Positions 8,085 to 44,239 are shown, counted from the stretch's first letter. The stretch: DNA of 64,000 nucleotides from Chara braunii (GCA_003427395.1 BFEA01000010.1:2105578-2169577), one strand, 5' to 3'. Program-made: numbers and translations. The notes: a model not told the origin generated them from the letters alone.

Positions 8085-8085
8085 C

Positions 8086-8515: not shown

Positions 8516-8519
<4 letters not shown>

Positions 8520-9631: not shown

Positions 9632-9667
9632 ACTTCTCAGAGGACTAGCGAAGTATGGAGGAGGGAA

Positions 9668-14887: not shown

Positions 14888-15367
14888 GAGGGTCCGAGGT
14901 CCTTGCTTTAACCCGGAAAGTCATTGACAGATACTAGTTGAACAACGAATCAATTCGCAGTTATCGGTGTTTGACAGAGCACCTTAAGGAAGTGCCAAAC
15001 AGTCATTGGCTCTCTGTGCGGATTGCCAGAAGCACTCTCAGGGAACCTTGATGCCTGGTTGAAGTTATGTCGTGATCTGTTTGGTGACTGAGCACCTTCA
15101 AGAAATATCAAACAGTCGTTGGTTGTCTGCGCGGATTGCCATTAGTACTCTTAGGGAACGTTGATGATGGCTGTGGATTTGTTCCATGCAGGTTATCAGT
15201 TTTTGGGCAGTCTTCCGCCACTGGGCTAGTTTGGTGGGTCTGTGGTTGGTCTTCCTGTTGGACCTAGATCTGTTTCGAGCAGAGTTTTGCACTCCATAAA
15301 TAGAATTGAACTTCAGGTCCCGCAAGTTAGCAGTTCTTGGGAAGTCTTTGATGCTTAATCGCAGTTG
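14888..15367 (+). repeat. Left terminal inverted repeat (~480 bp, starts GAGGGTCCGAG)
   Basis: Reverse complement of 7527-8018. The ORF track shows nearly the same peptide at 15098-15325(-) and 7530-7808(+). Confidence 0.78.
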
Positions 15368-16955
15368 TTGGAAAGTCGGGCCTAGTCTCGCAATTTGACA
15401 ACGACAACGCGCTGAGAAAAACTCACAAAAAATTCCGAAAATTGTAGGCTTCGTAGATTTGCTCGTGATCGTTCAAGGAAAAATATCAAAAATTTGAAGG
15501 AAGCACTTGTGGCATGCCGACCTTGCCAAGAGGGAGGAACCAATTTCCCATTCGACAAGACATGGCTCAAATGACAACCTTTTTCACGATTTATCCATTT
15601 TTTCGATAAGAAAGAAGACCTTTAAATAAAATATCATTTTTTGCGAACTTGCATAAATGATCAGTCTTCCAGTTACAATACAGAAGGTAACAATTTTGGC
15701 CAATCATCCATTTTGTTGAACGCCTCATATCGATCCTTCAGCGACAAACAATGTCGAAGCTCATGGGTCAAGCACACATACATTCTGGCGATAGCACAAT
15801 TGATGATCATTTTGTCGAACTTGCAGTTATGAACAAATTCTTGTTGACAATACAAAAGGTAATCATTTTGGCAAATTTGTAAACATAAACGGTCTTATCA
15901 CAAATGTATGGCATCCAAAGTGCGAATATGTTCGCATTTGTCATACGGAAACAACAGTCAGCATTCAGTGGAGAGTACGAGATGTATTCTGGCGATAACA
16001 AAATTGGTCATCATTTAGTGCACCGCTGAATTTTCTGAAGTCCGTAAAACAACTTCAAGCACACATACATTATGGTGATAATCGGTTTCCGAATTGAGAA
16101 TAAGTTCGCAGTTGTCATATGGAACCAACAGTCAGCATTCAGTGGAGACAAGAAGGATGGTGGTTGCGGGGAGGAGGGTACAGCAGAGGGGGTGAACCAT
16201 AAAACGGGGCGGCAAGCGCAGAACAGGGGCGAACCAAAATATGTGAAAGCTGGGCGATCGGGGTGGGGGGGGGGGAGGGGGGCTTTCACACCACAAAGTC
16301 TCGCGTAAGAAAGAGATAAGCACGAAACAATTTGGCGACCAAGAAGAAATCATCGATATCGTTCACCAACATCTTGCTAAATGAACCAGAGTATCGAGTC
16401 GTACGAGCATGAGTGTAAAGAATGTCCACAAGAGGACAAAGATGTCCCACGAGTAATACAGGAGCACAACCTGGAAACGAATAAAGGCAGCACGGCGCTG
16501 TCGCGGTCGTAGAGGACATAAGGAGAACAACCCGAAAACAAACAAAGGCAGCACAAAGCTAGGATATTTACATCCGATATTAAAGCATCCACTCAAAAGA
16601 TACTGCACCACGTGGCTAGTATATTTACATCGACATCTAAGCTTCTACTTCACCTAAGCGTCCTCTGCAACCCTCTAGCTGATGTTGCTCGGCAAGGAAT
16701 GAGAATAACCTGAAAACAAAGTTGACAGGTTCCTCGAAATGAAGAACCCTTAAAAAAACACTACATCACGAGGCTGGGATATTCACATCGACACCTAAGC
16801 GTTTACTTGATCAAAACATCCACTGCAACCCGCTATCTCATCAAAACAACAGCACAGCTCGAACCAGCCGACTGTTAGACTAAGTGGGAATAAATTCGCA
16901 ATTCTGCTTATGGCTTTGCGAATAAAAAACTTCGAGTATTTTTAAAATATGGGTA

Positions 16956-17600
16956 TTATTCTAAGCCTTGGAGTATGTCTACCGCAATCCTCAGCCTGAT
17001 GTTTGGAATGTCGCTTTGGGCTATCGGAAATGGTGGTGGATGGCCGCGTGCAATAAAAGAAGCGAAGGCAAGCATGAAAACACTGCAGCTCGACCCGTCC
17101 GACTATTGAGGGACACCATGAACAACCACCTCGGGCTCCGGGAGATTCAGTTTCGCGTTTTGACCATATTGACTAACTGCTTCGTCACGGAGGTATTTCG
17201 TGAAGTTCGCAAGCACATCGGAAGAAAAACCGCCATCGTCTTGTAGGAGGGAGTCGTACTACTCCAGTCGTCCTTCGCGGACACATAATAGGGTCCAGTG
17301 CACTCGATTTTTATGAACAGGAATCAATACCATGTTGTACAAGAAAATATTCACATCTTTTGTCCATCTCGCAACCCTATCATGTCGACATCCACCACCG
17401 ACGAGCTTGGTACAGAAAAACAGACTGAAAATGTAAACAGAGGGACACCCAGGCAACGTAGCGTTGCCAAGCAAGGCCAAGTACGACTCCACCACCTCGT
17501 CGGAAAGCCACCTCCCCTGGACAAGAGTTTGAAGATTTTTTCTGCTCAACAGAGTAGAACTGGCCCTTTGCGAATCAAGGAAACCACCACGTGGCCGTTG
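16956..17600 (-). pseudogene. Ulp1/SENP-like cysteine protease domain (peptidase C48)
   Basis: RWLSDEVVESYL, YIFSLFFCTKL, VARWTKDVNIF, LIPVHKNRVHWTLL. Reading past the stop gives YDSL and VPQ*SDGSSCSVFML, so the His-Asp-Cys triad is visible. Two premature stops. Confidence 0.9.
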
Positions 17601-18749
17601 CTGAAATCTCCGCAGACATCCTGCAACATTCTCAACTCTGTAGCGCTAATCTTCTCTGTAGGCAGGGAAACACGAAAAGATGATGTAGTCCCAGCTGCAC
17701 AAACACCCACGAACAAGTGTGAGGAGCGACCAAAATTACGGGGGCGAATTGGCTAAGAACTGTGTGCCCTTTTTCTAGAAAAGTTATATCCCTGACTGTT
17801 GAATGTATCCTTGGCGATGTACTTAGGATACGGGTCTTTGGAGATACCCCATTTGGCATCGTCATCAGACCCGTCAGACAAAGCAGTAATGCTTTCAATA
17901 GACGCAACCACATATTTCTGCAGAATTTCCTCCTTATCTATTTCACAAGCCTTCAGAACCCTGACAGCTCTCTGGGAAAGGCAAGGCATCTGGACCCTTT
18001 TAAACAACCCTACACTTGATGACGACGTCTTCGGTAAAGCGGCCAATAACCTCCCTGAAAAATATTTCCCGCGCATGGCTTTTGAAGTCTTCATGGCCAC
18101 GGACATTGACAACCTCACATCTGTAAAACATAGAAAACAACCCACAACCCACAAGTTGTTTTTTAACAAGTGGTAATAGCTACATGAGCCCATCACATCA
18201 ATTTGGATGAACACAGAGTTGAATGGTGACAGATATGTGAGTGCTACTATTCACAAATCTTACCGTGCTCAGGAGTCCTTCGAGGTAAATCGCCCACCTG
18301 TCGCGCCACTGTGCCAACGTCCACGGAGGATTCGACGTTCTGCACCTAGACCACGGTTGAGTCGCTAACCAGCTCGGTGGCAGCTGGGTCGCTGTCCAAC
18401 TCGATGGCTTCATGAAGTACCATTTCCCGACCAGTACCGAGGACAGACGCTCGATCACCTTGTTCTTCACCGCAATAGGTGGACTGAGAATCATGATCTT
18501 TCCCCTCTGGATCCATATGGATGTCGACCACCACCTCACCGCCTTCCACCACGGGTTCTTCGCCTTTCTCATCGCCTTAAAACCCGAGCTTCCACCAGGG
18601 GTTCTTCTTCGCCTTCCTCATCGCCAAGATGCCGAGTTTCCACAAATGTCCACGTACGTCCTTCCTCCCTACGGTCATTGCCTTCCACAAACGTCCATTG
18701 ACCTCCCTTAACATCACCCTCTTGCGTCGCCCCCACAACCGACCGACTG

Positions 18750-19550
18750 TGCAGAACCTCTTTGGACGTCCCGATCACCAGCACTCCTGCGTCAAGCCCC
18801 TTCAGCACTTTGCGAGCCGGCCAGTGTTGAGTCTCCTCTTCCCCCTACAGAGCATGCGCTTCTTATGAGAGCTCCTCTTCCCCCAGAGCCGTTGTACTCT
18901 TGCTCTCCGAGTCGACGAACGTACCCTCTGAACCTTGACGTTCATGCTCGCCAACCCCGGTCTCCAAAACTCTTGTATCGACCCCCTTCAGCACGTTGAG
19001 AGCCGGCCAATGTTGAGTCTCCTCTTCCCGCTGCAGAGCATGCACCTCTTGTGAGAGCTCCTCTACCCCCGGAGCTGCTGTACTCTTGCTCTCCGAATCG
19101 ACGGACGGACCCTCCGAAACTTGAGCGTTCATGCTAGCCCCGGTCTCCAACACTCCTGCATCGAGCCCCTTCCGCACTTCGCGAGCTGGCCAGTGTTGAG
19201 TCTCCTCTTTCCGCTGCAGAGCATGAGCTTCCTGTGAGAGTTCCTCTTCCCCCGGAGCTGATGTACTCTTGCTCTCAGAGTCGACGAACGCAACCTCCGA
19301 AGCATGGCGTTCATACTCGCTAGCCCCACTCTCCAACACTCTACGAGACTGGCAGTGTTGAGTCTCCTCTTCCCGCTGTACAGCATGCACTCCCGGTGAG
19401 AGCTCCTCTTCCCCAGGAGTTTCTGTACTCTTGGTCTCAAAGTCAACGGATACACCCTCCGAAGCACGACGTTCATACTCGTTACCCCCGGTCTCCAACA
19501 CTCCTGCAGCCGGCCCCTCCAGCACTTTGCGAGACTACCAATCTTGAGTC
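18750..19550 (-). repeat. Coding tandem repeat of ~160-186 bp (~60-aa acidic unit), 4-5 copies
   Basis: Repeated VLETG..E.ER..SE...VDSESKST.APGEEELSQE.HALQREEETQHW in ORF 18863-19525. Confidence 0.85.
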
Positions 19551-21379
19551 TCAACATATGAAAACGGCGGTGAGCAGGGGAACACTGTGCCCAACTGAAG
19601 ATGCGGGGGGTTGGACCTCACATTTCCTTGGCCTCGTGGAACTGTAGCGTGAGGAGCACTGCTGGCGGAAGGCCTGCAGGACGACGTTAATAATTCCGAA
19701 TGTATTCGGACTTTGCGGCGAGCACTGCTGGCGAAAGGCTCACAGGGCGACATCGGTAACTCCGAATCTATTCGGAGTTTGCGGCGCTCGCCAGAGCTGA
19801 GGGAATTGACGGTCGCACTTTCGCTCCTTCGCAATGCAGGCATCCCGGCCTCCAGGCAAAACGAAGACGCAGTTCCTGCCAAGGAATGGTTTTGCCGCTC
19901 AGGAGATGCTGCCGTATGCTGCAGACGTTCGCCCTCTTCCAAGAGGGGCAGGAGCAAGGTGTTGTGCACAGGAGGCGTCGGCTGCGTACTGTTGGACGGA
20001 CTCTCCTCAACATCGGGAAAGAAAGTCCTCGCAGACAAGTGCGAATCTACTCGCACTTGATAAGACTTCAGGGCGGCCTCGTCTCGCATGTCGGAATCTC
20101 GACTCCCTACGCAGTGGTTATAAGTTTCTCTAGACTCGCGACTCCCGAACACTCTACGCTTTTCGCCCGACCCCTTTCCGCCCGACCCCTTCCAGCCCGA
20201 CCCCTTTCCGCCCGACCCCTTTCCACCCGACCCCTTTCCGCCGACCCCTTTCCACCTGACCCCTTTCCGGCAGATCGTGAGTCGTCTCCTCCCTCACCTC
20301 CTCCAACAGATCCTGAGCCGTCTCCTCCGTCACCTCCTCCATGAGATCCTGAGCCGTCTCCTCCGTCACCTCTGCCGTCTCCTTCGTCTCCTCCTCCACC
20401 GCCTCTCGGATGTTCACCATCCGACGGAGGTTGCGGCATGCGTCAGTCAATGCCACGAGATGGTGTCGTTTCGAGTTTGTAGAAAGGCGCTCGAAACTCC
20501 CACATTTTGTTGTCGTACAGCTCGTCGAGCTTCTAGCCTGCATATGCATTGACGTCTGGCGGGGGCTCCTTTCGGGGTTCATCACACTCAAATGCTCCTC
20601 CAGAGTTTCTCTCGTCTTTTTCTTAAATGGACCCGCTCCCTGTCTGTTCAGGCCACTCCACTTGTCATCGGCTTCCTTCATTGCCACGACCCACTTTCCA
20701 TTCTTTACAGCAGGTTGGAATTTCTTGGGGTGTCGGATGACGTTGTGGCCCCAGACATCCTCCGTTGTGAACCGGTGGTGCTTCCCGTAGAAGACGAGTC
20801 TGTCATTCTCCTAGGTTTCATGGTCCTTAGGGAGCTTGTCACCAGGTTCGTACTCATAGTCTCTCTCTTCTTCCCCGTCATCAGACGATTGGTCCTCGAC
20901 TGTTTCGCGCTCAAACACACGCTTCAAACCGGCAGGGGACGCGCTATATCTCCGAGGAACACCTTCCCCTTCATCATCAACCTGTGCAACCACCCGAGGA
21001 AGTGTCATGGACTCGAAATCGAAGGTTTTGGAGTCGCTCAGCTCCTCCATGTCTTCAGCGTCGAAACGGTCCTCCTCGTCAAACTGCGCCTTGTAGTTTT
21101 CGAGGGTCAGCGGTTCGGCCATCAAGAAGAAAATGTGCTCCAGCCTTTTCAGGAAATTTGAGACAGACTCCCTGCGTGCATTGTGGTAACCATTCAGCAC
21201 ACCGAACACCAGGTTTCTCCGTCGATTGTATTCCAAGTCGGTCTGAGTAGGCGGTCCTGGTTGGAAAAGGAAGTCCCAAACCTCCGTCCTTTTGTTCCTC
21301 GACAATTTCCAATACATGTCACGTTTGGGATCCCAGTTTCGTTCGTCGGTGGTCTGGACAAAAGAGCAATGGTGGTGAG

Positions 21380-22230
21380 GGTCCCCCACGCGTGTTTTAA
21401 TGAACTCATTAAGGTAATCGATCATCCTCGCCTCATTCTCTAACGCAACGACGTTCCGACCGCTGCGCAGGAGCTCCCACACGACAGACGCATGCGCCTT
21501 CCGAAAAAAAAAAAACAGTTTGCCCAACTTTGGAAAAGTTTTCGAGCAGACCAATTAGATGAGTCGGGTTGTGTTCCCTGTCCCCGTAAGTAGCTCCACG
21601 AACACTTGTCATGCCGCCGTCCTCCCACTGGCTACGAGGGAACTTGTCCTCGTCTGCCACATCGAAACAGGCCACAACCTGTCCTGATGGGTCGGATGAA
21701 CAGGCAGCTTTCGAGAGGGCCGCCGCCGCGGGTTTGGCCGAACTAGGAGCATGAGCACGGCGAGGCTTCGTTGGACTACTGTCCGGGAAGACTGCGACCG
21801 TGTTGTCTGCCAAGTTCTCGCCATTAAAAACCACGTACAGACGATCATACTCCTCGACCAGCATATTGCCTTCTTGGATAGTGGCCTGCTTTTATGCCTG
21901 GCGCACCCACTTCCCTGCCCTGACGGGATGGACGCTAAGCTTGGCCATGCCTTTCAAGAAACTTAGCTCCCAACGAGAGGGGAAGAAGACCACAAGTGCC
22001 CAGTACCTTGGCGATAGGGTTTCGAGAACGCCTTGCAAGGAGGCGAAATCGTCTTCTTGCCAGTCTGAGAGGAATGTGGGATCACACAAATCGAGGACGT
22101 ACAAGTTGCATACGTAATGTCGCACAATCTCACGGATCTTAGTGAGACAACTGTGAGCTTGGGAAGGCGGACAACCGAAAGGAATAAGGCTGGTCACCCG
22201 GTTGAGCTTGTGCCATTTGATGTGCTTCAC
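21380..22230 (-). pseudogene. Beta-class N6-adenine/N4-cytosine DNA methyltransferase-like fold with degenerate catalytic motifs
   Basis: Motif order matches the N6_N4_Mtase topology: LYVLDLCDP, VLETLSP..ALVVF, GKWVR, EEYDRLYVVF, NPTHLIGLLENFSKVGQTVFFF, ELLRSGRNVVALENE. Canonical DPPY and FxGxG are absent. Confidence 0.55.
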
Positions 22231-23179
22231 ATCCCCGCTGACCCTGATCGTGTCGTGGACTTCCTCCTCCATTCATCGCAAGATGGAACGGACGGACTTC
22301 TCGAAAGATTTAGGGAACCTGTCATCATCGTACATTCTCTTCGTTTGCAAGTGTTCATGTACTCCACCACGCCTTGGAAATGCTTCCACAGTTCGACCCA
22401 CACCTACTTCGTGGGGCCTTGCGGCCCGAACTCCACCAGAAGTAGCCCTTGGTCCGAAAAAAAGGGCTCCCGCAGCGCCAAACCTCTGCGTCCTCCTCCG
22501 ATACAAGGAACAAGATGTAGTGAAACATGCGGAGCATCATGCGGTCCACTTTCCTCATCGCGACCATGTCTTTAATTCCAGGCTTATGTTGACGTTTCAG
22601 ATGCCCGCCCACCGATTGCACAAACACTCCCCTCAATGCGAGAATGTCGTCGAGGATCGACAGTTTTTCGGCATCGGTCATGTCAGTGAGAGACTGCCAA
22701 CAGAACATGTATGGTTCCTTCACGACGACGAAGAACTTGTCTTCCGCTTGCGTTTGCTTTTTGGTCGGAGGCGGCGGGACCGGACCAGCCACCCCATCTT
22801 CGTTTCACGAGCCGCCCCTTTGGCGCCCATTTCCGGAATCGCTTGAAGACCCGGAGATTTGTCTGCCATGTATTTGCCCGGCTTCAACAAGGGCGTCTTC
22901 CCGTCTCCGCCCAACAACTTTCCCTCGGCCCATTTGTCGTAAAACTTCATGCCTTTCCGAAAAACCTCATCACCGGCCGTCACAATCGGCATCCATTGCC
23001 TCAATGCACTGCCAATGGCAGCGACGTGGTCCTTGTCGGCGAGCGTTGTCGTTTTACTTGCCATCGTCCAGTGAGCCCCGTTCGGACTCTTTCCCAAAAA
23101 CAGCTTTTGGAACTCGAAAAACGCTTGTTTTTCGGCCTCCTTACCGGAAGGGTTCCCTTGAATGGCCACTGACCTTCCT

Positions 23180-23690
23180 TAATTCTCCCATGCCTCCCGC
23201 ATGTCATTGAAAGCGGCCTTCTGCGCACGCTGCTTAAACATTTTGTGTCTTGTGTTCTCTGTGAGACTGACCTGCAAATACCCTCCAAAGTCTTCGTCGG
23301 AGAACCACACGACTCTCGCCGGCCACGAGTGCATCTTCCACAATTTGAATATTTGCTCACCGTCCAACTCCTTCACAACAGCCACGGTGTGTTGTCCGTT
23401 GACAGGGTAATAGAAGTACTTATCCTTGTCCTCTGGCTTGAAGACATCCTTGTGAACCCTCTCAGCTCTCTCCGGCTTATGCCTCACTGACTTGTAGATG
23501 GGTGCCAGAACCAAAGGGTTTTTCATCCAGATCTTCCCCTTTTCATCGTGGAACTGCCTTAGCATCGCACCCTTCATGTCCTCCACACCATCGCGAGTGA
23601 GACTGCGGTGATTGTAATATCTTTCCCAGAGCGGGATGTCGTAGACCTTCCTGGGGTCGATGAGCAGTTGAATGGGAGGCTCCCTCTCCA
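23180..23690 (-). pseudogene. ParB/Srx-like N-terminal domain
   Basis: NHRSLTRDGVEDMKGAM..NPLVLAP..YYPVNGQHTVAVVKEL..WPARVVW..YLQVSLTENTRH parallels the ParB pattern R..l..Pi.v..i.G.hR..A..L..vp..v..l.EN. Confidence 0.6.
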
Positions 23691-25099
23691 CGATTTCACC
23701 GTCATCGTTTTGCTCGTATTCGAGCCAAAACGCTGCCGCTTCGTCGTACTGCCTACCGACAGCCTTTTTGCCAGCACTCGACCCCTCACCAGTCTTCCTC
23801 CGCCGAGGTTTCTTCTCGCCATCGTCTTCTTCAACTGCTAGTTTCCTTTTGGATTTCTCTGACGGTTCTCTCGCGGCGGCAATGCCTAGACGAGTCGAAT
23901 CTCCTTCACCCATAGTTTGTCCTTCGCGGATGGTCAAACTGTCGGGCCTCCTCGCCTTCTTACTTGTTGTTGCACTCACTTCCTTCGATTGCCTCTTTTT
24001 GACTCCTTGTTCTTGTCCGCCACGCATCCTTGGAGTCCTCTTTCCCGAGGCACGTTCTCCGATGTCACCTTCATCCCCGCCAATCATCGGCTCCGAGTGT
24101 CCTTTCATCCTCTTCATGTGTCGGGTTTGTTCCGCCACCTCTTCTCGCACCGTCTTTTGTCACTCGCGCTTATTTTCCGAAGAAGTCGGCTCCCCACCGG
24201 AGCTGTCGCGCACAGCGCCCATCCCTTCATCCTCATTCCCTCCAACCTCTTGCCCTGATCTGTCGGATTCTCTTCTCGTCCCATCTCGAAGCGAATACGT
24301 GTCGCCCTGGCAGACGACCTTGAGGATTTTCGGAGTACCGACCCTGTGAGTCCCTGCATCTGAAGAATGCAAGCCAGACGGGTTCTCAAGAGCATCCGGG
24401 CCGACCTGCGTCTGAATGTTGCGCGCGTGCCCCTTGCCCTGACCCCCAGCGCCGTGAATCACACTCTCGTGCCCCACTGGCGTAACAGGGGTTTCTTGAG
24501 CCAAGCTGGATGACCCCTCATGGGCTGGCAGAAGCGGGAAAACATATTCTCGTGGAAGAACTGAACGGTCTTTCGGCATCTTCAACGCAAGATCGAGATA
24601 TTCCACTGGCGGTGGAAGACGCCTGCTGTTGTCATCATAAAGCCCTTTGAAGTGACGGCAAAGTAGCATGTTCGAGTCATACCCCGCGAAACTCTTGATC
24701 GGCACTATCACACCCTTAACACCTTTGTAAGGCAGTCTGCAGTGGTCGTATAAGATGTTAGTGTGGAGCTTGAGCAAGCCTCCAGACCGTTTGTCGAACG
24801 AGACGATGGTACCGAGAGGAAGAACGTCGGCTGCTCCCTCAGCGTCTGGAAAGCAAGTGGGTCGCATGAAAACAGCTGGCCCAATAAGGTTCCCCTCAAC
24901 AACGAAGCTCAAAAACCATTGTGCATCCCTCGTATGGAAGTACGGAGGACTAGATTGTTGAAGAGGTCGTCCCTCCCCGGGGTAGACGCCCCAACGCTTG
25001 TCGATGTGTTCTTCGCGAACGCCATTTTACGCCCAACCCTAGACCAAATCGGATGACCGGGAGGAAAGCCACGAGGTTTTCCTAAGAGAACAGAAGCAA

Positions 25100-26000
25100 A
25101 GTGCGAACTACCTGAGTTGACGAAATAGAGGACCAAAATGACGTAAGAGATGGGTGTTTGAAATGCACATGAAGTCACAACAATTGGGTAAAGGAGAGGA
25201 AAGACAACACTCTTCTGGCAGAGTCAGTTCGGAGGAAAGATAACAACTCCTTGGAAAGAGTGTGAACCAACTCGCTGTTCTAGAAACGAGGAAGAGGCGG
25301 TTTATCTTTGGGAAAGTGCGAACTAACTCGGAGTTATGGGAATGAAGACCTCTACAACAAGTACCGCATGGGTATCGACAAGTGAGAACCAACTCGCAGT
25401 TTTGGAAACAAGACAAAACAACGTACGAGATGGGTGTTTGAAATGCACACGAAGTCACAACAATTGGGTAAACGAGAGGAAAGACAACACTCCTCTGGCA
25501 GACTGAGTTCGGAGGAAAGATAACAACTCCTCCGAAAGAGTGCGAACCAACTCGCAGTCCTCGAAACGAGGAAGAGGCGGTTTATCTTCGGGAAAGTGTG
25601 AACTAACTCGGAGTTCTGGGAATGAAGACGTCTACAACAAGTACCACATGGGTATCGACAAGTGCGAACCAACTCGCAGTTCTGGAGACAAGACAACAAT
25701 TCCAACTCGCAGTTCAGGAAACGAGAAAGTCACGTTTGAGAAAGAGGCGGCTTATCTTGGGGAAAGTGCGAACTATCTCGGAATTGTTGAAATGAAGATC
25801 TGAAACATGTACGACATGGGTGTTACAAGTGCGAACTAACTCCGAGTTTTGGATACGGAGGGCAACAACTCCTCCAGCAGTGTAGGTCATAAAGTGCGAA
25901 CTAACTCGCAGTTGTGGAAATAAAGAACGGACTTTCAAGAAAAAGGCGTCTTATCTTGGGGAAACTGCGAATTAACTCGCAGTTGTGACTCCTCCAGCAG
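25100..26000. repeat. ~280-bp tandem duplication rich in the 22-bp palindrome, upstream of the giant minus-strand gene
   Basis: ACGTA.GAGATGGGTGTTTGAAATGCAC at 25141 and 25421, with about 10 AAGTGCGAAC.AACTCG.AGTT motifs. Confidence 0.85.
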
Positions 26001-26114
26001 TATAGGTCTCAGTTGTGGATCAGTTCCGACCTCGCTGGGATGAATGAAGAAAAACTGCGAATTAATTCGGTCTTCTTGAAGCGGCACGAACGAACATCAA
26101 TATATATATCTATA

Positions 26115-32569: not shown

Positions 32570-35067
32570 TTGCCAAGGACCGCTCCCACAGACAGATCTG
32601 AATTCATAGAAACAGCGCATCGGTCCCCGACAAAAACTCACCCTGGAACTCCCGAAGCAGTCCTTCAGGTTTTGTCTCATCCCCTACCTGGAGAAAGGAG
32701 AAGATATAATCGGAAAACTAGGCCGGTTAGCAGGTCAGAACATTCGAAGAGGGCCAAATGTCGATTGAATGAAACTAACATCGCGCTCGTCCCAACGCAC
32801 AAATGTTGTAAGAAAAAGTGTCTTCGGGTCTTGACCATTGACGATATCAAACTGGTGCACGAAGCTTATTACGAAATGTCCCTCGAAAGGAGGATCGAGT
32901 GGTGGATGCAAACCCTTCACAATTTCACTATCCTCGACGATGGTCTGGAAAGAGTCGAACCAGTGCACTGCAAACGCTGTGTGTGCATCGCTGGTTGGTA
33001 TAAAATAATAGGGATATGCCGAAACACATTTCGTCGTTATAGCAAGTGCAAGTCAGACGGGGTCGCCCGTGGCCGGCATGGTCGATGGGGATTGTTGAAC
33101 CCGAGACCGGAGTATGTGAGCATGCTGGCTTCTGTGACAAGGTTTGTGGAAGAACATGGAGATGCTATGCCTAACGAAATGGTTGTGAGGGGAACCTCAC
33201 AAAGACCTAAAGTTAGGCTCCCTGCTTATTTTACGAAGTTCTTTGTCTACGAGTCCATCAAGGCGGACATGGAAGCGGCGGGTCAGACCGTCGTTTCGGA
33301 ACAAGTCTTTTACTCCATATGGAGGAAGTACTTGTGGCATGCCGACCTTGCCAAATCCAACTCGTTCACAAAGTTTAGCGAGTGCGTCCGCCTTAGACAT
33401 GCCAGAGATAACGCCCGTCGCCTTCGTGACCGTAAGGATTTTGACGAAAGGCACCGTAAACACCAACTAGATCAGGTCGCTTACCGTGCGAATTACGCTG
33501 ATTGGAAACTTCGTTCCATTTTGAACCCCGCAGAATACCTTTGTCTTATAGTGGATGGAATGGATCAGAAAAAAACAACCATTCCTCACATTGGCATGTA
33601 TAATTACTCCGAGGATCATCGACACGACATGATGATGAAAACGAACCTAACCGCAGTTGTAGCTCACGGCAGGAAACCGTCCATTTATGTTTACACGTAT
33701 TTGCCTTTCTATGCGCACGGTTCTGATGGTACCATGACGTGCATTGTGCGGACTCTATGTGAGTTGCAGGCGTCGGGACAGAAATGGCCACGCCACTTCC
33801 GAATCCAGACGGACAATTGCTGGAGGGAAAACAAAAACCAATACCTTATGTGTTTGGCCTCTCTTCTGGTGACATTCGGGATTTTCGAAGATGTTGAAGT
33901 GCAGTTCATGCTCGTTGGCCACATTCATACCGACATAGACGCGACTTTTAGTGTTTTCTCGAAAAAGTTGAAGGACAACGATACTTACACCATGAAGCAG
34001 TTGTTCTCGCTTATCGAGTCGTCGCCCAAGATACCACCGAAGTTCACCGAGCTCGATCACATTGCCGATTGGCGCCGGGTAGTGGATCGATACGTCGACA
34101 AAAGCATCATCGGCGTGTTGAAACCGCATCTCTTCAAATTCTTCATATTCTCGTCATAGTGTACAAAAAGTACTGCACCAATGCGGAATGGATGCCGGAA
34201 GGCAGACCAGTTCACTGGTTCCTGGTTGTCGATGGAGAGTATGCAGGCCCTACCTCCCCTCCACAACCATGTGTTATTCCCTATGTCGTTAAAGAGGATT
34301 TTCGGATAGCTCGTGACAGTGTCCAAAAATTCCTGGACGTCCTCGAACAGCATAGACACATGTGGCAAACATATAGGAAGCAGGAGGTCGACAAGTGGAA
34401 GGATGCTTTGTCTTACTGGAAAGCCATCTTCGTCGAGGTGGACGATATGATCCAAGAGCAAAAGAAGAAGGAGACGGGAGAGGGTGAGGAAGAGGATGTC
34501 ATCGGGGCGGACGAGCCCGAGATCTACCCTAACGTCTTCTGGCCACAATCAGTCCGAACTGTGGAGGATGTTCAAGAAACCGACCCTCCTTCGCCAGAGG
34601 TTTCGCTTATATATGTAGGACCGAGGGCGGGCCGTCCAAAAGTGGACTTCGACCCTCGGCGTCATATAAACAAAGATGATTTTGTGATTGTTAGGCCACC
34701 CGATGAGGAATTGTCTCAAGGTGTCCCATTTTGGGTTGGTAGAGCACAGTCTAAGGTTGTGGACGACCGCTCCTCTCCTCATTTCGGTTGTTTATGTATA
34801 CAGTGGTGGGTGCCTACAGGTCGCTCGTCCGATCTTCGCGAGAGGTACTCTGGCGCTTGGACGAAGAGGTGGAAACTTTCCACTTCAGACGAGGAACAAT
34901 GGCAACGTGCCGAAACCGTGGCTTATTCCTGGAGAAGACCCTTCCGCAAAGGAACGGATGAAAGCAAATTTGTGAGAGGCCTTACGATACCGACATCCGT
35001 CTGCGAGAAAGCACTTGTGGCCTTGGGGGATGGCTGTCTTTCTGGTCCGTCCGACGTGCCCATTTAG
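32570..35067 (+). pseudogene. Sola-like DDD transposase with C-terminal extension; one frameshift near 34150
   Basis: HKCCKKKC, VCIAGWYKIIGI, CLIVDGMDQKK, IQTDNCWRENKN and FMLVGHIHTDIDATFS match the Sola-type D..DNC..NKN..GH.H..D pattern. The protein continues in ORF 34069-35067 (YKKY..EWMP; FVIVRP..PFWVGR..IQWW). The true start is probably in an upstream exon (donor G|GTAAGA near 32438). Confidence 0.8.
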
Positions 35068-35164
35068 TGAAATGCGAACTGATTCGGATTTGTTAGCTAC
35101 GAACTCCGCAAAGATAATGACGAGACGTTAACTGCGAACTGATTCTTATTTCTTGTCTTGTAGG

Positions 35165-36032
35165 ATGGATGACGACAGCGCATCATCGTCCTACGAAACC
35201 TTGTCGTACGTGAGCAAGTATTCCTTTTCGATCGAGAATGTGGACAGGGATCTTATCATCGTGAACAAAATATTTGGGCACGAGGAACGGTCAGTCTTGA
35301 CAACAATTATCTGCATGTCGAAGCTGGAGTCGTCCTCGACGGTTATATTGAACCCGAAACTCGTGTTGTTGATAGACAAACTTCAATAATTCTCGATAGG
35401 GTCAAATATGTGGTACCTCTACTGGAGTTCAGAAGAAGTCCAACTTTGGGAAGTGCTATCAAGTAAGGAAGAAAACCTCGATGTCGAAGATATGGTAGAT
35501 TTGTGGGACTCACTGCGCTTAGAACAAGACTGGGATTGAATGGACGACCAACATGCTAAACTTTGCGCTTGGTACTGCATCGGGAAGCCACTGTTGCGTT
35601 CCCCTGTGATCATAGACTACCATGGCCGAGCTCGTTTGTTCAACCGTGGCACCCCTGTACTAACTCTTTTCACGGCGGCCAAGCTTGATGGTAAGCGAAT
35701 GAGAGTTTTCTTCCTTGTGAGGGAAGACTTTCGCGAGCTCACGTCCGAGGGTGCTCTGAAGCGCTTCCGTGATCGATTCGAAATTAGATCCTTCGCTCGC
35801 AAAAGAATTGAATCTAAGGGTTGACTGTTTGGTGCATGCCCAACTTCACTTCCTTTTCGGATTGTGTGAGGAGATATTATTCACGTTGGAACACAATGAC
35901 AACTACAATGACTACACTCTACGAAAAGTTTCGCATCACCATTCGGGTGTCCAAACATTGGAATTCGTAGGTGGTAGGCGGAGACAAATCTACGACTGTC
36001 CTTACTGTAACGATGGACACCAGTCGCCCTGA
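35165..36032 (+). pseudogene. Cargo paralogue D, first of the array, directly after the transposase
   Basis: Acceptor TTCTTGTCTTGTAG|G-ATG. Motifs WYLY, KLCAWYC, IIDYHGR, RVDCLVHAQLHFLF, IYDCPYCNDGH. Several frameshifts. Confidence 0.8.
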
Positions 36033-36708
36033 CCTGCTATGTGAGCCTTCGTATTTTGAGATTTCCACAACTCCGAGTTAGTTCGCACTTTGTTGCTGTA
36101 CTCATAGGAAAACCTCGTTGTTCATCGACTTCCGTGCTGTTCACATTAGTCTTAGTTAACTCGTCATTGTTGTCACTGTTTCCACCCTGCGGCTCTGCTA
36201 TTTTCGCTTCTCCTGTCCGTCGCACAATTGGAAGTACGGACACCCTGTAACGAAGTGCGAATCTATTCCCAGTTATCGGATCCCCAGTAGGCCGTTTCTC
36301 CAAACCGGATTCCCGACCTCGCAATCACGTCGTTATTGTCATGTGCAGTGCTCACCCTCATTTCCTATACTTTATATGTCCCTTTCGACATAGTCCCCCC
36401 TGCATGTGTCGCGTGCTTCACGCACTCGCATCATCCTTGCACAATTGGGAGTGGGAGTATACTCGCAGTTTTCACTTCTCTTGTACCTTCCACAATAGGA
36501 AATATGGGCACCCTGTCACGAAGTGTGAATACATTCTCAGTTATCAGACCCCGAGTAGGCCGTTCCGTTGCTCCTTTCAATACATGTGTGTGACTTCGCT
36601 TCATTATGAACTGGCGTAAGTGGGCGTATACTCGCAGTTGCCATTCCTGCCAGACTCCGTGGACGTCATCGCTAACATGCTAACTCGTGCTTCCGCACGT
36701 AATGCAGG

Positions 36709-37593
36709 TCGAACTCCAACCAGACCTCGGCCCTCGCAAGCGCTTCTAGCTCGTCTCACGACGGCGTCTCGCCAGACCGGATTCCCAATCTCGGTCTCTT
36801 CATTTTGGACAAGAATATATGGGAGTATGAGCGAGTGAACTGTTCACGACGATATTTGAACATCGAGTCGGATGTTGCGTCGGATGGGCAAGTTCCCGTG
36901 ATATCGAGGATGGGCGCCACCGCCGATGACCTTGTGGTCGATGGAGATATGGGTTGGAACTTCTGGTACCTGTACTCCTTGGAAGACGAAATTGATGTAG
37001 AGCCCCTCGGCGAGGAGGGAGATCCAGAACCTGTCACTCCTGAAGAGATGACGGACGCGTGGCGCGTCGTCTGTGCAAAGCAGAGTTGGTCAGACGCAGA
37101 TAGGAGGCAAGTAAAGCTTTGTGCCTGGTTTTGCCTGGGACAACTGGTTGTGCCTGCGCCGGTCATCATAGATTATTACAGTCGTCTTCGGGTATTCAAC
37201 CGTTATACGACGGTTGTGACGCTGTTCACGGCCGTGAAGGTTGACGGTCGAAACATAAGAGCGCTTTTCATTGCAAGGGAGGAGTTCCGAGGAGTCACCC
37301 TCAATTCTGTGCAAGCGTTTCGCAACCCCACGGTCGAGGGTGCGCTCAGACGCTTCAGAGATCGGTTATCGTACAATGCGGCATTAAGGAAGGAGATCAA
37401 CTTCAGAGTCGACTGTTTGGTGCACTCTCAGTTGCACTACCTTTTCGATAACTGTGACGAGATTTCATGGAAAGTGGAAGATAGGGACCGCAACTTAGAG
37501 GCTGTTTTTCAAGAGGAGGAATACCGTCTCTCGACGACCCATGATGTGTACGACTGTCCGTACTGTCGCAACGGACATCCTGAATATGTGTAA
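36709..37593 (+). CDS. Cargo paralogue B, copy 2: open for 294 codons from the splice acceptor, but the family ATG reads TCG
   Basis: The frame is open from GCAG|G-TCG AAC TCC AAC through ORF 36805-37593. This is the best-preserved family member. Confidence 0.65.
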   Translation, partial: SNSNQTSALASASSSSHDGVSPDRIPNLGLFILDKNIWEYERVNCSRRYLNIESDVASDGQVPVISRMGATADDLVVDGDMGWNFWYLYSLEDEIDVEPLGEEGDPEPVTPEEMTDAWRVVCAKQSWSDADRRQVKLCAWFCLGQLVVPAPVIIDYYSRLRVFNRYTTVVTLFTAVKVDGRNIRALFIAREEFRGVTLNSVQAFRNPTVEGALRRFRDRLSYNAALRKEINFRVDCLVHSQLHYLFDNCDEISWKVEDRDRNLEAVFQEEEYRLSTTHDVYDCPYCRNGHPEYV

Positions 37594-37935
37594 GGAAAGT
37601 GATCCTCAATAGGAGAGTAGTCTGACCGTTCCACATGAATGACGTGTTGGAAATAAGTCAAGATTAAGCGGCGGTTGCAGGACTTGCGCTCGCTTGCGAA
37701 GTGCGAATTTATTCTCACTTATCAAACCACATGAATGACGTGTAGAAAATAAGTCGAGATTAAAAGGCGGTTATAGAACTTCCGCTCTCTTGCGAAGAGC
37801 GAACAAATTCTCAGTTATCGAACCATTTCGTGCACATCAAGATCCTGTATTTGTTGCTTATGCACTCGGTTATTTTTTATGCACTCGGGAGAATTGCAAC
37901 TGGCGCGCTTCCTTGCATTTCTCCGCTGATGTAGA

Positions 37936-38836
37936 ATGGATATCGGTACTTCGTCGCAGAGTACGAACTCCTCAGCGCCGGACACCGATTTGATCATTTT
38001 GTCAAAGAACATTTTGGAAGACATTGGGCGTTGTGTTGTGGACCGTGACTACCTGCACCTCGAAAATGATGTTGCCCCAGATGGGGAAATCCCTTCATGG
38101 CAAAGTACGGAAGACGGACCCCTTCAGATTTGTTGTGATACACGGTCGAACTTTTGGTACCTCTACACACTGATGAAGGATGTACAGGCATGCCCTATCG
38201 GGTTGGAGTAACTTCTGAAGAGGGAACCATTCGAAGAGGAACCCGTCCAAACTTCTGAGATGGTGGAAGCATGGCACATTCTATGTGAGAAACTAAAGTG
38301 GACGTCGTTGGACAAGTTGCATCAAAAATTTTGTGCCTGGTTTTGCCTCGGGAGACCGACGAAGTCGGCGCTGGTAATCATAGACTACTTCGGTCGAGTG
38401 AGGGTGTGTAATCGTGGCACCACCGTGGTGACGCTCTTCACTGCCATGAAGGTGGGCGGTCGAAGAATAAGACCTCTTTTCCTAGCAAGGGAGGAATTTC
38501 ACGGTGTCAAACTCTCTTCTTTTCAAGTGTTTCACACATCCGGCCCTAGTGGTTCCTTTGCGCGGTTCAAAAAAAGGTTAGCCATAGATCATGCACTCAA
38601 AGATGAGCTAGATTTGAGGGTTGACTGCTAAATGCACCAACAACTTAACTATCTCTTTGGATAGCTGCGACGAAATAAATTTCACAGTCGAACATAGGGA
38701 CAACGAATTGCGATTTGTTTACTGTCGTCTGGATTATTCAACCTCCGGACCTCAGGATGTGATACTGCGCAACGGGAAGACGAGATATGTGTGCGACTTC
38801 CCTTACTTCAATGCTGGACATCTACATCTTCACTAA
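37936..38836 (+). pseudogene. Cargo paralogue C, copy 2
   Basis: Near-identical to 2952-3849, with different stops (38209, 38629). Confidence 0.8.
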
Positions 38837-38879
38837 CGGCGTTAGACTCGCACTATGCTTACATCCCTTTGAATTTCTT

Positions 38880-39310
38880 TGAATGTTACCACATCGGAGA
38901 ACATTTGTGGTTTAGAGTGGTTTGGCAACACTTGGATTCCCAGATACCGCTACCTTCTGGTTGCCGATGATGATGACAGTCCGCTGTTCTACGGAGAGAA
39001 GATGGTGACAGTCCGCCGTTCTGGGAGACCGTTACGCGTTCCAAATCCATAACTCGAGCAATTTGAATGAAATTTTAAGAGATATACTCGTGCGCGCCTT
39101 GCCAAATATCGAAGCATATCTTCAGGCCCGAATTCGAACCAAATCCTTTTAGTCGACTTCGACATTAATGAGCGTGACGACGACGATCGTGGCAGGCTTC
39201 TCGAAGACTGTACATGCTGCTACCATGGAGATCGTACTAACTCTTTTCACGCGACGCATGATACGAAGATAGTCATCGTCTCAGGATATCCGGATTCCAT
39301 ATGCGAATAG
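38880..39310 (+). pseudogene. Deleted remnant of cargo ORF E, copy 2
   Basis: Matches parts of 4210-4280 and 4580-4893. Confidence 0.75.
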
Positions 39311-41072
39311 ACTCGCATTTACCATCTTGCAATAGGTCTGGCTATATCCAAGCGCTTCTGTGTGGGACTTGTGTAGGCAGGTGAACATCGTGTCGGGCTT
39401 GGATGAGCTTTTGTCTAATGTAGGACTTCAACACGAATCAGCATTTGTGTAGGTCTTCGACTTGAATCAACTTTTGTGTAGGACTTCCGTTGAACTTGTG
39501 TTCGACATGTTTGTATTAAATTTTGAGGTAGGGTTTGTTTCAAGTGTAATGTAGGACTTTTCGGCTTGTGTTGGACTTCGGTTGAGCTTGTGTTCGACAT
39601 GACCGTAGTATGTAGAGCCTGTGTTCGACGGCTCGTGGTTTTGGCGACGAGGGTGTGTCATATAGACTTTTCGGAAGCGTCTTGTGTAGATGAGGGCATG
39701 TCATGTAGACTGTTCGACGTGGGCTTGAATGATTTTTGGAAAGCCTACATGTACCTTAGAACGTATCCTTCAATGATTTTTGGAAAGGCTTCATGTACTT
39801 TGTGATTTTTGGAAAGCCTCTGTGTACTTTGCAATGTGGGATTGAATGTTCTCTTGCATTGAATGATTTCTGGAAACGCCTCTGTGTACTTTGCAATTTG
39901 CGATTGAATGATTTTCTTGCATTGAATGATTTATGAAAATTCTCCATGTGGTGTACAACTTGACCTTTAGAAAAACACTAGGCAACTTGCAGGTGTCTCC
40001 ATCTCGATGTTTGCGATGACAAGAGTTAATTATATGAATGGATGTTATGTATCTTGTCCATGCAAAGATTTGATGACTCGCACTTGTGGTGTGCGCACTT
40101 GTGGTATGAACCCCGAGCAATCTACTTAAGTAAGAGTTCACTCGCACTTTGCTTCAACTTAACCTTTGAAAAAACAACAGGCAACTTGCAAGTGTTGCCC
40201 TCTCTCCATCCCTCTGACTTTCATAATAGTGATGTTGCAAGTGTTTCGATCTCTAATCTTCATGTCATGGCATGCATTTCGATGAAAAGATGATTATGTC
40301 AAGGAGGGGATCTTTGTTTGCGATGACAAGACTGAATGATATAAATCGATGTTATGGATTTGTCCATGCAAACGTCCACATTAAATCACCACGCCTATGG
40401 TGTGCGCACCTAACTCTCCATCTAAGTGCGAGTTCACTCGCACTTGTTGTGTGAACCCCAAGTAATCCACTTAAGTGAGAGTTCACTCGCACTTCGCTTA
40501 TATGCCATTCAACAGAAACGACCACCAACCTAGCCCCAGTTGCGACTGAGCAACAAAGACTGTCCAAAAACTGATAACATGGGGGGCCTGGAGTTCAATT
40601 CTGTTTGTGGAATGCGAAACTCTGCTCGAAACAGATCCTGGTCCAACAGGAACGCCACCACAGACCTCGAACGATTTGTTTTTGCACTGACTCCAAACAA
40701 TTCGACTAAAAAGATTGCACATTTTTATGTAATCATTTGTTGGATATTCACAAATCCCGATGTTAAACGTGTTGTAGCTAGTTTAGCTTAGATAGGCATG
40801 TACCATCAGTGGGAGTTAGGAATGGAGAAAATGTCATTTGATTAGGAGGAAAAAAGGCAGTTACACGAACACATCGCGCAGAGCTGCATGCTCGTGTGGT
40901 TGTGCAGTGTGTGTACTTGAAAGCATGTACAAACCTTGTGAATATTCAGTTAGGGACGTGACGAATGGGTGTAGGCTTCACCAGGGGAGTTATCATTTGC
41001 CAACTTTATTTATGAGTGTCTACATGTCTGTATGTATCGTTTAATATATGTGTGTGATGTGTAGGGTGCATA

Positions 41073-41992
41073 ATGTTGTCTAGAACATCGACAAGCATGA
41101 GCACGAGTCTCGAGACGCACATGCGTTTAGTAGAACCGTTTCCTCCTTGCGCGAAATCGGTGCGACATTATAACGGTCATACTAGGATCCACGAAGTAAC
41201 CAAAGAGGACTTCGAAGAGGACCCATGGATGACTGTCGTCCCGTACATGAACCGGCATCTTGACGATTGGAGCGATGCTACTTGGAACGCGATGGAAAGT
41301 GGTTGCCCTTGGGCAAGCCATTACAAGTTTGCCAATATGTTAGAGTTCGGGAACCTCATTACACTGCCTGATGGTGTCCTCGAGCACAAGTTCCTGAACC
41401 ATATGCGCAAAACACTACGCTGCATTAGCCGCTATAGTAGTCGCTTCGACTGCGACGACATTCGCCACGAACTTGGGGAAGTTCGCGGAAACAAAAGTTG
41501 GTGGACTGCGCTCGTCATTGTTCATTCTTGGAGCAGTACCCACTCCGTTGCCTCTGGATTTCTCCACAAGTTGTGTCATACTGTGGTGTGCGGTTGACTG
41601 TTGTCGGATGTGATTTCGCCAGAGTGCTATGTGTCGCTACTTCGAACAAAAGAAGGAAACTCGTCGATGAACTTGTGCGTGTATCACGAAACGAGGTGGT
41701 ACTTGAGGGAAGGCGGGGAAGTTCGCGGAACAAGTTCGTGTCGTTGCGGTACCTCGGTGCAGATGGGTGGTCAGATTTAGTGATAGCAGGCCAATTCGAA
41801 GATTTTTCATTGTGGCGTGAGGTGGAAGAGAAAGTGTCCGACATACGAGACTTTATAGGAAATTCCTTAGCACGACCGGGAGGGTTTGTTAGGATGAAAT
41901 ACATGTCCGTATTTTCGGAGAATGCAACAGTCGAGGAACCGCAGATCCACATATATGGATCATCAATGAATGCTATGTATGGCTTTAGTTAA
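41073..41992 (+). pseudogene. Unknown ORF pair (174 aa and 164 aa, overlapping frames) inserted among the subterminal repeats
   Basis: Coding-like composition, upstream GTGTAG acceptor, and an internal repeat GGGAAGTTCGCGGAA. No recognisable domain. Confidence 0.35.
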
Positions 41993-44239
41993 CGACCTCG
42001 TCCGCGGAAAACCCCGTATGTCACTAGATCTTGACGGGTTGTCAGACCTTGTGTTTAAGGGAAAAGGGAGCAAGAGGTGTGAGAGGCATGTGTGTAGCCG
42101 AAAATGGTAGACATGAAGCAGTAGAGAGAGGTGTGAGAGGCAGTAGTTGCAAGTAGACGCTATACCGAGTATGTTCGTAGTTCTGTAATTTACGATTTTT
42201 GGAAAACCTCTGTGTACTGTGCAATGTGTGATTGAATAATTTTTTGCAGTGAATGGTTTTTGAAAACACCGTTGCGTACTTCGCAATGTGCGGTTGAATG
42301 TTTTTTTTGCATTGAACGATTTTTTGAAACTCTCCCTCCGGTGTACAACTTGACCTTCAGGAAAACAAAAGCTCAAGTTGCAAGTGTTTTCATCTCGATG
42401 TTGCGATGACAAAAGTTAATGTTATGAACGGATGTGATATTTATTATCCATGCAAAGATTTGATGATATTTTCACCTTGGAATATACAAGTGACAAGCCA
42501 ACGTCCATATTAAATAATCATGCTGATGGTGTGCGCACCTTGCTCTCCATCTAAGTGCGAGTTCACGCACACTAGTGGTGTGAACCCCGAGCAATCCACT
42601 TAAGTGAGAGTTCACTCGCACTTTGCTTCAATTGGACCTTTGCAAAAACAACAGGCAATTTGCAAGTGTTTCCCTCCGTCCATCCCTCCCACTTATATAA
42701 TAGTGATCTTGCAAGTGTTTCGATCTCTCATCTTCATGTCAAGGGATGCATGGATGTTTTCGATGAAAAGATGCTTATGTCAAGGAGGGGATCGATGTTT
42801 GTAGTGACAAGAATGACTGTTATGAATCTATGTTATGGATTTGTCCATGCAAAGATTTGATGACATTTTCAGCCGGGAATATACAATTGACAAGCCACCA
42901 TCTATATTAAATCACCACGCTAATGGAGTGCGCACCTAATTCTCCATCTAAGTGCGAGTTCATTCGCACTTGTGGTGTGAAGCCCGAACAATTCCCTCGC
43001 ACTATGCTTCAACTTGACCTTTAGAAAAACAACAGGCAACCTGCAAATGTTTCCCTCTCTCCATCTCTCCCGACTTTCACAATAGTGACCTTGCAAATGT
43101 TTCAATCTCTCATCTTCATGTCATGGGATGCATGAATGTTTTCGATAAAAAGATGCTCATGTCAAGGAGCGGATCGAACGCACCGCCGGTAAGCACCTGT
43201 ACATCTCGAAGCAAGAGCACGTCCAAATTGGAATATTGTCGGGTCCTTGCGTTGTTGACTCCCACATGATGACTACACTAAACCGCGGCAGGATGACCGG
43301 TCTGCCTCTCCGATGTGGATCTAACGGTGGATTGCGTCAAATCTGCTCTCAAAGATCAACATCGGGGATGGGGGCCTGCATCCGACCACTGTTTGCTTGT
43401 AAGGCATCATATGATGTGTCGATATAACCGACATCCAGAACTGTTTGGTGAGCATCTAGTGCTACGCCAATAAGTTAAAAACACAAGTGCCGACTGACAA
43501 ACAAATAGATGGACAGACGTAAACAAAAATGCAAGATAGACTGTCTGCCCAGGGATCATTTATCAGATGGATAAGGGCTCATCACCTCGCGCATGGGCAT
43601 GTGCATGTGTGTGTGTGTGTATGAAAAGAATTAAGAGAATGAGAAACGAAAACAGCCAAGGCATGGCAAACCAGACACGGACAGAAAACGGACGAACAGG
43701 TAGGCAAGACACACTCACACACACGCATAGAGGAAGAGAGAAAAAATAAAGGAGGTAAAATTAAAGATAACGTATCTTTCCATGATGAAATGGAAGAATC
43801 ACTTACCTTCTGTGCGGTCCGAGCGTAGTACAGCGGGGACCATTACATTCAAAAAAGAAACCGTAAGCGAGATTGTTAACTGCTTACGAGAACGAGCATT
43901 TCACAGATTGCTTCCTACTGGAGGTTGTATGATAAGAAGATCACAAAAGTTGTGTAACTCACGGATCATCTGTTATTGGTACACAGACCCTCGTCCATAA
44001 AGCGTTTGCAAGCATACATGGCTAGAAGAGGGAAAGACAGACATACAGACACAAACAAAAAACAGACCGAATCAGACAGACAGTAAACGGAACAAGCACG
44101 GATACAAACAAACATACAGTCAAAAAAGCAGACACAGACAGTTGGAAACAGACAATCAGACAGATAGGCAATCAAGAGAAAGGGGAAGCAGGGTGAAGGG
44201 CGCACAGTCATAGCCAAGTTGCATTGCCACGGCTGGATA

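Follow-up and report, generated by a model that had tools for sequence, protein, structure and literature searches.

What is the long, multi-gene segment that occupies much of a 64,000-nucleotide stretch of the Chara braunii genome (contig BFEA01000010.1, positions 2105578-2169577; hereafter "the window", with coordinates counted from its first letter), and what would its genes be doing for it? A sequence-only reading had joined two adjacent copies into one giant transposon of 27-28 kb, carrying a Sola-like transposase, a minus-strand gene with Ulp1-, methyltransferase (MTase)- and ParB-like parts, and five paralogous cargo genes. The window does belong to a family of giant cut-and-paste DNA transposons of C. 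braunii; these are bounded by 30-bp terminal inverted repeats (TIRs) and are 31-38 kb in full length, a sum of pieces from several copies that replaces the shorter estimate. The idea of one giant mobile unit stands: a Sola-like transposase is accompanied by a divergent gene of ParB/MTase-like/Ulp1 type and by further cargo, and the same order recurs at independent loci. The predicted components are likewise present, namely a DDD transposase, a Ulp1 domain, ParB-like and methyltransferase-like folds, and a 145-bp satellite. The open reading frame (ORF) of the transposase at 32570-34159 matches C. braunii proteins at 82-87% identity; one of the loci recovered (L006) is the window itself.

Two copies contribute to the window, one with its right part and the other with most of its length, and pieces of a Ty3 retrotransposon separate them (9056-12362). 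Copy 1 is represented by its right third (1-9055), comprising cargo genes A0, A2, A3 and C, repeat modules, satellite, inner repeat and right end, with the remainder upstream of the window. Copy 2 extends from its true left end at 12363 to ~43482, where homology with other copies stops; it is damaged by frameshifts and stops and lacks its right end (~2-3 kb), none being found in the window at up to five mismatches. Position 43160, formerly taken as the element's end, is therefore passed by the homology, which breaks off at ~43482. Both duplications on which the reconstruction had been built were recovered: 14866-15367 aligns in inverted orientation with 7527-8040 at 89% across 514 bp, and 1197-6496 shares five blocks with 36468-40666, their identity being 75-89%.

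The inverted repeat that had been read as the TIR (14888-15367/7527-8018) is internal, because homology to other copies runs 2.5 kb further to the left (down to 12363, in L001) and ~1 kb further to the right (up to 9055, in L002). The true left TIR lies at 12363-12392 on the plus strand, is 30 bp long and starts AATACAC; the true right TIR of copy 1 lies at 9026-9055 on the minus strand and matches it at 28 of 30 positions. This 30-bp repeat begins AATACACATTTCGTTAAAA, and the same end sequence stands in unrelated flanks at seven ends, four of them left (window, L001, L005 and L013) and three right (window, L002 and L007). The inner subterminal repeat (14866-15367, minus strand, in copy 2; 7527-8495, plus strand, in copy 1, where it is a tandem duplicate with a CT microsatellite after each copy) is missing from the left arm of L013, the end of which is intact; it is thus a variable subterminal module. 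Sola2 and Sola3 elements have termini of the form GRG/GAG...CYC/CTC, and Sola3 targets TTAA. The assignment that had been drawn from such GAG...CTC termini falls, since these belong to the internal repeat beside a CT/GA microsatellite and the true termini start with AA.

The termini read AAT...ATT in the main family and AAC...GTT in sister elements, of which there are two end types, AACATGTTATTCGTTAAAA (L001 at 12269 and L009 at 21388) and AACTGACATTTCGTTAAAA (L012). That AAT/ATT might be part of the target site was considered and rejected, given that empty-site homologs of the L001 insertion lack it; the terminal AAT is the element's own. In the suggested check for target-site duplications (TSDs), the sister element L012, with both ends in hand (5144 and 40908), proved to be flanked by a 4-bp duplication, CATC, a single case expected by chance at 1/256, and none was obtained for the main family, for which a walk on contig 461 met an interrupted left arm and no listed protein was located in copy 1. 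The 4-bp duplication on insertion, seen in the sister family only, is attributed to the Sola-like DDD transposase; L012 has no transposase in its readable sequence, and much of its middle consists of gaps. Ten flanking tetramers are mixed (e.g., CAAC, GGGG, ACCC, CTGA and CATC) and do not show the AWWT or AT-rich target preference of Sola1 and Sola2 (for AWWT, PMC3627910, PMC3845634). Both element ends sit in Ty3/gypsy retrotransposon DNA.

Between the ends, the gene order is conserved, and the transposase and the minus-strand gene co-occur at other loci, as had been predicted. Locus L013 can be read without a break from the left end into the transposase, by way of Ulp1, MTase fold, ParB and central repeats, and L008 together with L007 continues collinearly from the ParB gene through the transposase, four cargo A genes, C, two B genes and the inner repeat to the right end; L003, L004 and L002 have the same order, so that it is backed by six further family loci besides the window. 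A private insertion of 1.25 kb in an (AT)n tract (26117-27363) is not family structure; it contains the assembly gap (an N run at 26496-26915) between two (AT)n tracts. At this site L003, L004, L008 and L013 have the (AT)n tract only and align on both sides; since these four copies run straight across it, the two sides of the gap are collinear in one element, and the gap touches no gene. The insertion has internal direct and inverted repeats and is possibly a microsatellite-targeting non-autonomous element.

The family is abundant. The N-terminal part of the minus-strand gene product (the "polyprotein" below) has matches in at least 52 annotated Chara proteins, and its ParB-MTase region in 174 clusters at 50% identity; among 30 proteins looked up by name, 29 are from C. 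braunii and one is a metagenome ORF of the Joint Genome Institute (JGI). Summed contig depth over the transposase reaches 2,500-4,400, versus 6-10 for single contigs, which hints at hundreds of copies, depth being no copy number. Many contigs hold several copies close together, and L001 contains nested elements, a family member within the central palindrome cluster of another (8242) and a sister-family member within cargo A1 (12269).

The transposase (31888-35067, plus strand; ~1,060 aa with an inferred start codon) has a frameshift near 34150 and stops in its 5' part in copy 2, and matches the DUF7869 profile PF25273 with an E-value of 3e-49. Candidate catalytic Asp codons lie at 33554, 33812 and 33932/33938, in DGMDQ, DNC and HTDID motifs common to a 34%-identical homolog from outside the family; the N-terminal motifs are Cys-rich. 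The motifs appear to resemble those of Sola transposases. Together with the TIRs and the sister-family TSD, they suggest a Sola-like DDD enzyme, a label that fits the DDD chemistry, TIRs and 4-bp duplication described for Sola (PMC10741241). No match to a Mutator-like element (MULE) transposase was found in Pfam, TIRs being present, and no tyrosine recombinase captain of the Starship type was detected; the DDD transposase is the sole mobility gene found. A metagenome scan with the transposase returned one small contig (83% identical), and a viral scan with the outside homolog returned no matches.

The largest gene, which couples two DNA-handling domains of bacterial type to a SUMO protease, lies on the minus strand. 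Its exon 1 (18264-25025) encodes an N-terminal domain, a charged linker, a ParB-like domain, a helical region, an MTase fold and a long low-complexity region; frameshifted and interrupted by stops in copy 2, it runs in a single frame over 6.9 kb with few stops in L013. A predicted GT-AG intron of 143 nt (18121-18263), with splice sites conserved in L001 and L005, would join it to exon 2 (16962-18120), a Ulp1/C48 SUMO-type protease (PF02902) with His-Asp-Cys present and in-frame stops in copy 2, giving a putative polyprotein of ~2,700 aa. Searches were run with pieces of this protein and with database gene models. In one family gene model (P0153), residues 575-837 form a protein kinase domain (PF00069), which may be captured cargo or the product of a fused annotation.

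Judged by its predicted structure, the ParB-like domain (22780-23760, with the helices that follow) has a ParB/sulfiredoxin (Srx) fold. The model (pLDDT, the predicted local distance difference test, 80) aligns best with PadC (Z 8.2); the top eight of 48,161 chains are all ParB/Srx and the rest score below 5, and the rows returned from a structure atlas are all ParB. ParB CTPases, which hydrolyse cytidine triphosphate (CTP), carry a GxxR arginine motif, and ParB binds palindromic parS sites. Here the arginine is lost and the motif reads GQH-T or GQH-N in 46 of 47 members, with Y and Q invariant and G, H and N near-invariant. Language-model features of this region are closest to fungal DUF3723 (score 0.96, 196 shared features); the Pfam model of DUF3723 matched none of the 47 members. 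Viral ORFs of 430 aa on IMG/VR contigs of up to 524 kb (L014-L020) read QRP...YYYIIDGQHT, the same arginine-less variant. As candidate relatives they were set aside, the GQHT motif alone being shared and insignificant at database scale.

The MTase-like domain (21150-22150) has the fold of a beta-class amino-methyltransferase. A family member modelled at pLDDT 80 reaches Z 15.9 to CcrM over 209 residues (root-mean-square deviation 3.8) and resembles RsrI as well, PvuII and the rotifer N4CMT follow at Z 14.3-14.6, and the atlas gives TM scores of 0.61-0.64 to PF01555. Active beta-class enzymes have motif IV (D/N/S)PP(Y/F/W) and an FxGxG loop as motif I for S-adenosylmethionine (SAM). With the position of motif IV assigned by strand order, 28 of the 30 aligned members retain its Asp and none of the 30 has PPY, the motif reading D-L-C-E/D/P and similar; in motif I, FxGxG is replaced in 47 of 47 members by F/L-L-G-K-A-H-A, while Y-x-x-x-E-R-N-P and G-K are strongly conserved. 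From the loss of PPY and the altered motif I we infer a pseudo-enzyme, that is, a catalytically dead MTase fold.

Sequence searches of PDB, Pfam, NCBIfam and PHROGs with the ParB, MTase-fold and N-terminal domains and with cargo A, B and C gave no significant matches, and the ParB-MTase region has no sequence-level match among prokaryotic proteins. The JGI ORF mentioned above (L010, JGI 3300064063, on a 7.7-kb contig) is 29% identical and stop-free over 1,419 aa of ParB-MTase; a Ulp1 ORF comes next, after a spacer that resembles an intron. All three families (main, L009 and L012) have the polyprotein.

Besides this protein, the family carries its own short motif, a 22-bp palindrome of the form AAGTGCGA(A/G)T-NN-A(T/C)TCGCACTT. 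Scored on a 16-bp core with two mismatches allowed, it occurs 58 times in 40 kb inside the element versus once in 24 kb of flank, shuffled sequences giving 0-3. In copy 2, 43 of 47 palindromes are non-coding: ten stand before the polyprotein (in a repeat block at 25134-26116), twelve before the transposase (30518-31712), two to five before each A gene and three before B; the 1 kb next to either true end is free of them. Other family copies have the same pattern, with foreign flanks free of palindromes. The sister L009 has 39 copies of a related motif with the same 8-nt spacing and one base pair changed per arm, and the types separate well when one mismatch is allowed (19 own-type against 0 L009-type matches in the window; 29 own-type against 2 window-type matches in L009). 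L012 has a different central palindrome, with 22 matches.

Comparison between copies indicates what has been maintained. The ratio of nonsynonymous to synonymous substitution rates (dN/dS) was computed for the transposase (0.34-0.36), ParB (0.36), the helical region (0.22-0.24), the MTase fold (0.27-0.44, one comparison) and cargo A and B (0.42-0.51), and is higher for cargo C (0.68), the N-terminal domain (0.80) and Ulp1 (0.73-1.1); shifted-frame controls gave 0.85-1.01. Most of the cargo thus appears to have been kept by selection while the element replicated, with Ulp1 weakly constrained. Private C-to-T changes amount to 4.8% in CG, 4.1% in CHG and 2.1% in CHH contexts, against 1.2% for A/T transitions, so that resident copies were probably methylated. 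The CpG observed/expected ratio is 0.98 in the element versus 0.66 in the flank.

These features can be arranged into a mechanism. The polyprotein, dimerised through its ParB-like part, would recognise its own 22-bp palindrome clustered before each gene; the dead MTase fold could serve as a DNA-gripping or shielding module; the Ulp1 domain might remove SUMO from nearby silencing factors; and the element's promoters would in this way escape CG/CHG silencing, as those of VANDAL do through VANC/KIU. The anti-silencing part draws on the parallel with VANC, which binds family-specific motifs in non-coding VANDAL DNA and has demonstrated anti-silencing activity (PMC5735166), and with KIU, which joins a VANC-type system to Ulp1 (PMC13317346). 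We give about an even chance to this proposal of a polyprotein dimer that binds the palindromes and opposes silencing. A phage ParB-like protein activates a DNA-modifying enzyme without needing the nucleotide-binding (NTP) residues (PMC13229309), so that a pairing of ParB with an enzyme need not use CTP.

Several observations weigh against this proposal. Ulp1 is weakly constrained, with a dN/dS of 0.73-0.86 in one comparison and ~1 in others, and the high CpG content may reflect youth alone. No DNA-binding helix-turn-helix was identified in the polyprotein. No TSD was seen for the exact main family, and no main-family copy read had both ends. The palindrome pattern was derived from this element, which makes the enrichment inside it partly circular, the other copies and the shuffles serving as control. 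Lastly, three oligo-dT RNA runs gave 4, 289 and 19 reads over 32700-38650, on both strands, in spacers too and mostly from other copies, with no splice joints and no proper expression of this region in the sampled material.

A wider version, held only tentatively, is that the whole clade uses a prokaryote-derived ParB/parS-like pair as an address system, in which ParB would load on the palindromes and deliver the dead methyltransferase and the SUMO protease to keep the element active. If this were true, the anti-silencing system would have an origin separate from that of VANC, protein and site would be co-evolving in many families, and ParB-like proteins (the DUF3723 of Starships included) would stand out as a shared need of giant eukaryotic elements.

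Among the other explanations, the one that survives best, though we consider it unlikely, makes the polyprotein a helper of transposition: the ParB-like part would load at the palindromes and spread or bridge, bringing together ends more than 30 kb apart or compacting the element in the manner of TnpA on the subterminal motifs of En/Spm, silencing having no role. The ParB/Srx fold with its conserved Y, Q, G, H and N residues speaks for it, as do the binding of palindromic parS by ParB and a large size that makes synapsis hard. The feature likeness to DUF3723 points the same way, a conserved accessory gene of fungal Starships (10.1101/2021.12.13.472469), but this link has no support from hidden Markov models; moreover, the arginine of GxxR has given way to another residue, the palindromes gather ahead of genes and avoid the terminal 1 kb, and Ulp1 is left unexplained. 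Somewhat less plausible still is that the palindromes are sites for the transposase, a cargo A protein or a host transcription factor, while the polyprotein would do something unrelated, for example tether the element to target sites or act in protein turnover. The four cargo A paralogs under selection without a known fold, the Cys-rich N-terminal motifs of the transposase and the quite different central palindrome of L012 would fit; yet a related palindrome persists in L009, without cargo A detected in the 28 kb fetched, and the polyprotein occurs in all three families. That the MTase fold is active with unusual motifs, writing N6-methyladenine or N4-methylcytosine at or near the palindromes to mark self, we regard as improbable: the clear beta-class fold with its likeness to PvuII and N4CMT, the Asp of motif IV, the conserved Y-x-x-x-E-R-N-P and G-K and the dN/dS of the domain (0.27-0.44) are offset by the P-P-Y/F/W of motif IV found in none of 30 members and the FxGxG loop replaced in every one of 47, and inactive MTase domains are known in transposons (DIRS1; PMC4738411). 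A segmental duplication or a nest of small elements mimicking a giant unit, suggested by the frequent nesting, truncation and retrotransposon interruption of copies and by the lack of a family copy read with both ends, is very improbable and largely ruled out: the ends are sharp and identical in flanks that are unrelated, seven loci keep a collinear order, the genes are under selection, and a sister with the same layout is bounded by a TSD.

The remaining cargo, all on the plus strand, differs from the five paralogs first proposed. Family A has up to four paralogs (36-49% identity), three of which are held by copy 2: A1 (35165-36050; ~290 aa), A2 (36709-37593, start codon lost) and A3 (37936-38830). 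Two further genes are unrelated to A and to each other, namely C (a remnant at 38876-39310; an intact 252-aa frame at 4135-4893 in copy 1) and B (41073-41992; ~290 aa, frameshifted), and none of A, B and C has a database family match. In copy 1 the array spans 65-4893, with A0 (65), a stub (1132), A2 (1438), A3 (2952) and C (4135), and each cargo ATG lies one base after a YAG acceptor, as do A and C starts in several copies. Shared-leader splicing of the cargo genes was considered; the RNA reads contained no splice joints that would speak for or against it. Cargo B is also present in both sister families and cargo A in L012; in the 28 kb fetched of L009, no cargo A was detected. L012 contains a hAT-like DUF659 gene (11092-16337), which the annotation fuses into the 3,245-aa model CBR_g28053. 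As an alternative carrier, hAT was rejected: the gene lies within Sola-like ends, on the strand opposite to that expected of the transposase, and is probably nested, its own ends not having been found.

Non-coding modules comprise a central degenerate array of 21-bp repeats (28837-30421) and the 145-bp satellite, with 9.4 units in copy 1 (6351-7722, plus strand) and one unit in copy 2 (40522-40666). Within the left arm, 13055-13682 matches both 50739-50943 of the window and, in L012 (2466-3589), an inverted repeat of 370 bp that lies outside the element; it may be a captured or nested repeat. The Ty3/gypsy pieces between the copies include an integrase tail with SH3 (a match to SH3_Tf2) and a chromodomain-like ORF (9095-9628), a sequence like a long terminal repeat (10251-10609, also at 44247-44612) and a gag start. 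In flanking DNA, a 53-bp tandem repeat is present in seven copies (48146-48522), and further degraded retrotransposon-like ORFs lie at 54700-63300, where a poly-A run borders the gap at 59746-59826 and a CA microsatellite comes last.

A literature search, its scope without the Chara genome paper and Repbase, returned no description of these elements or of a fusion of ParB, pseudo-MTase and Ulp1, and the regulatory module may well be a new system. The relevance of the family extends to annotation: more than 100 Chara gene models that carry the label hypothetical or Ulp1-like belong to these elements, with consequences for counts of gene families. The polyprotein and its palindrome offer a testable protein-site pair for the escape of large transposons from DNA methylation, and may represent another way, independent of VANC, to control the epigenome in a sequence-specific manner.

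Sola DNA transposons were reportedly described by Bao et al. in 2009. They have a DDD transposase, TIRs and a 4-bp TSD and are present in moss (PMC10741241, PMC3627910, PMC3845634); their usual size is 2-9 kb, and more than 15 kb is rare (PMC10741241). The Chara element shares the DDD transposase and the TIRs, with a 4-bp TSD in a single case from the sister family; it differs in its 31-38 kb, its six or more genes, its AA...TT termini and the mixed targets in ten flanks. The size range reported for the Sola type is thereby roughly doubled, and a giant multi-gene clade of DDD transposons is placed in a close relative of land plants.

Like VANDAL, the Chara element is a multi-gene DNA transposon that encodes a Ulp1 domain and has multiplied a short motif of its own family in tandem repeats of its non-coding DNA, so that the parallel drawn by the sequence-only reading, a multi-gene unit with a Ulp1-type gene on a different transposase, holds. 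In contrast, VANDAL elements are non-TIR Mutator elements with a non-palindromic 9-bp motif, whereas the Chara transposase is unrelated and the motif a 22-bp palindrome; the partners of Ulp1 in Chara are ParB and an MTase fold, and anti-silencing, demonstrated for VANC, is proposed for Chara by analogy. Phage and bacterial fusions of ParB_N and N6_N4_Mtase, which are among the nearest atlas structures, have the same two folds in the same order. The Chara protein, however, has ~370 extra residues between the folds, has lost the catalytic and SAM motifs, is fused to a eukaryotic Ulp1 and resides in a eukaryotic transposon. Among eukaryotes, the available passages of PMC4738411 describe haptophyte and chlorophyte MTases from phage ParB-terminase loci and inactive MTase domains in DIRS1, that is, amino-MTase folds of prokaryotic origin, partly transposon-borne and some of them inactive, as in Chara. 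They concern other MTase groups and other hosts, and those passages describe no fusion of ParB-N, pseudo-MTase and Ulp1. Starships, finally, are likewise giant, cargo-carrying eukaryotic elements, and the likeness to their DUF3723 by features provides a lead only; while they use a tyrosine recombinase and carry variable host cargo, the Chara element has a DDD transposase and a fixed, element-specific gene set.

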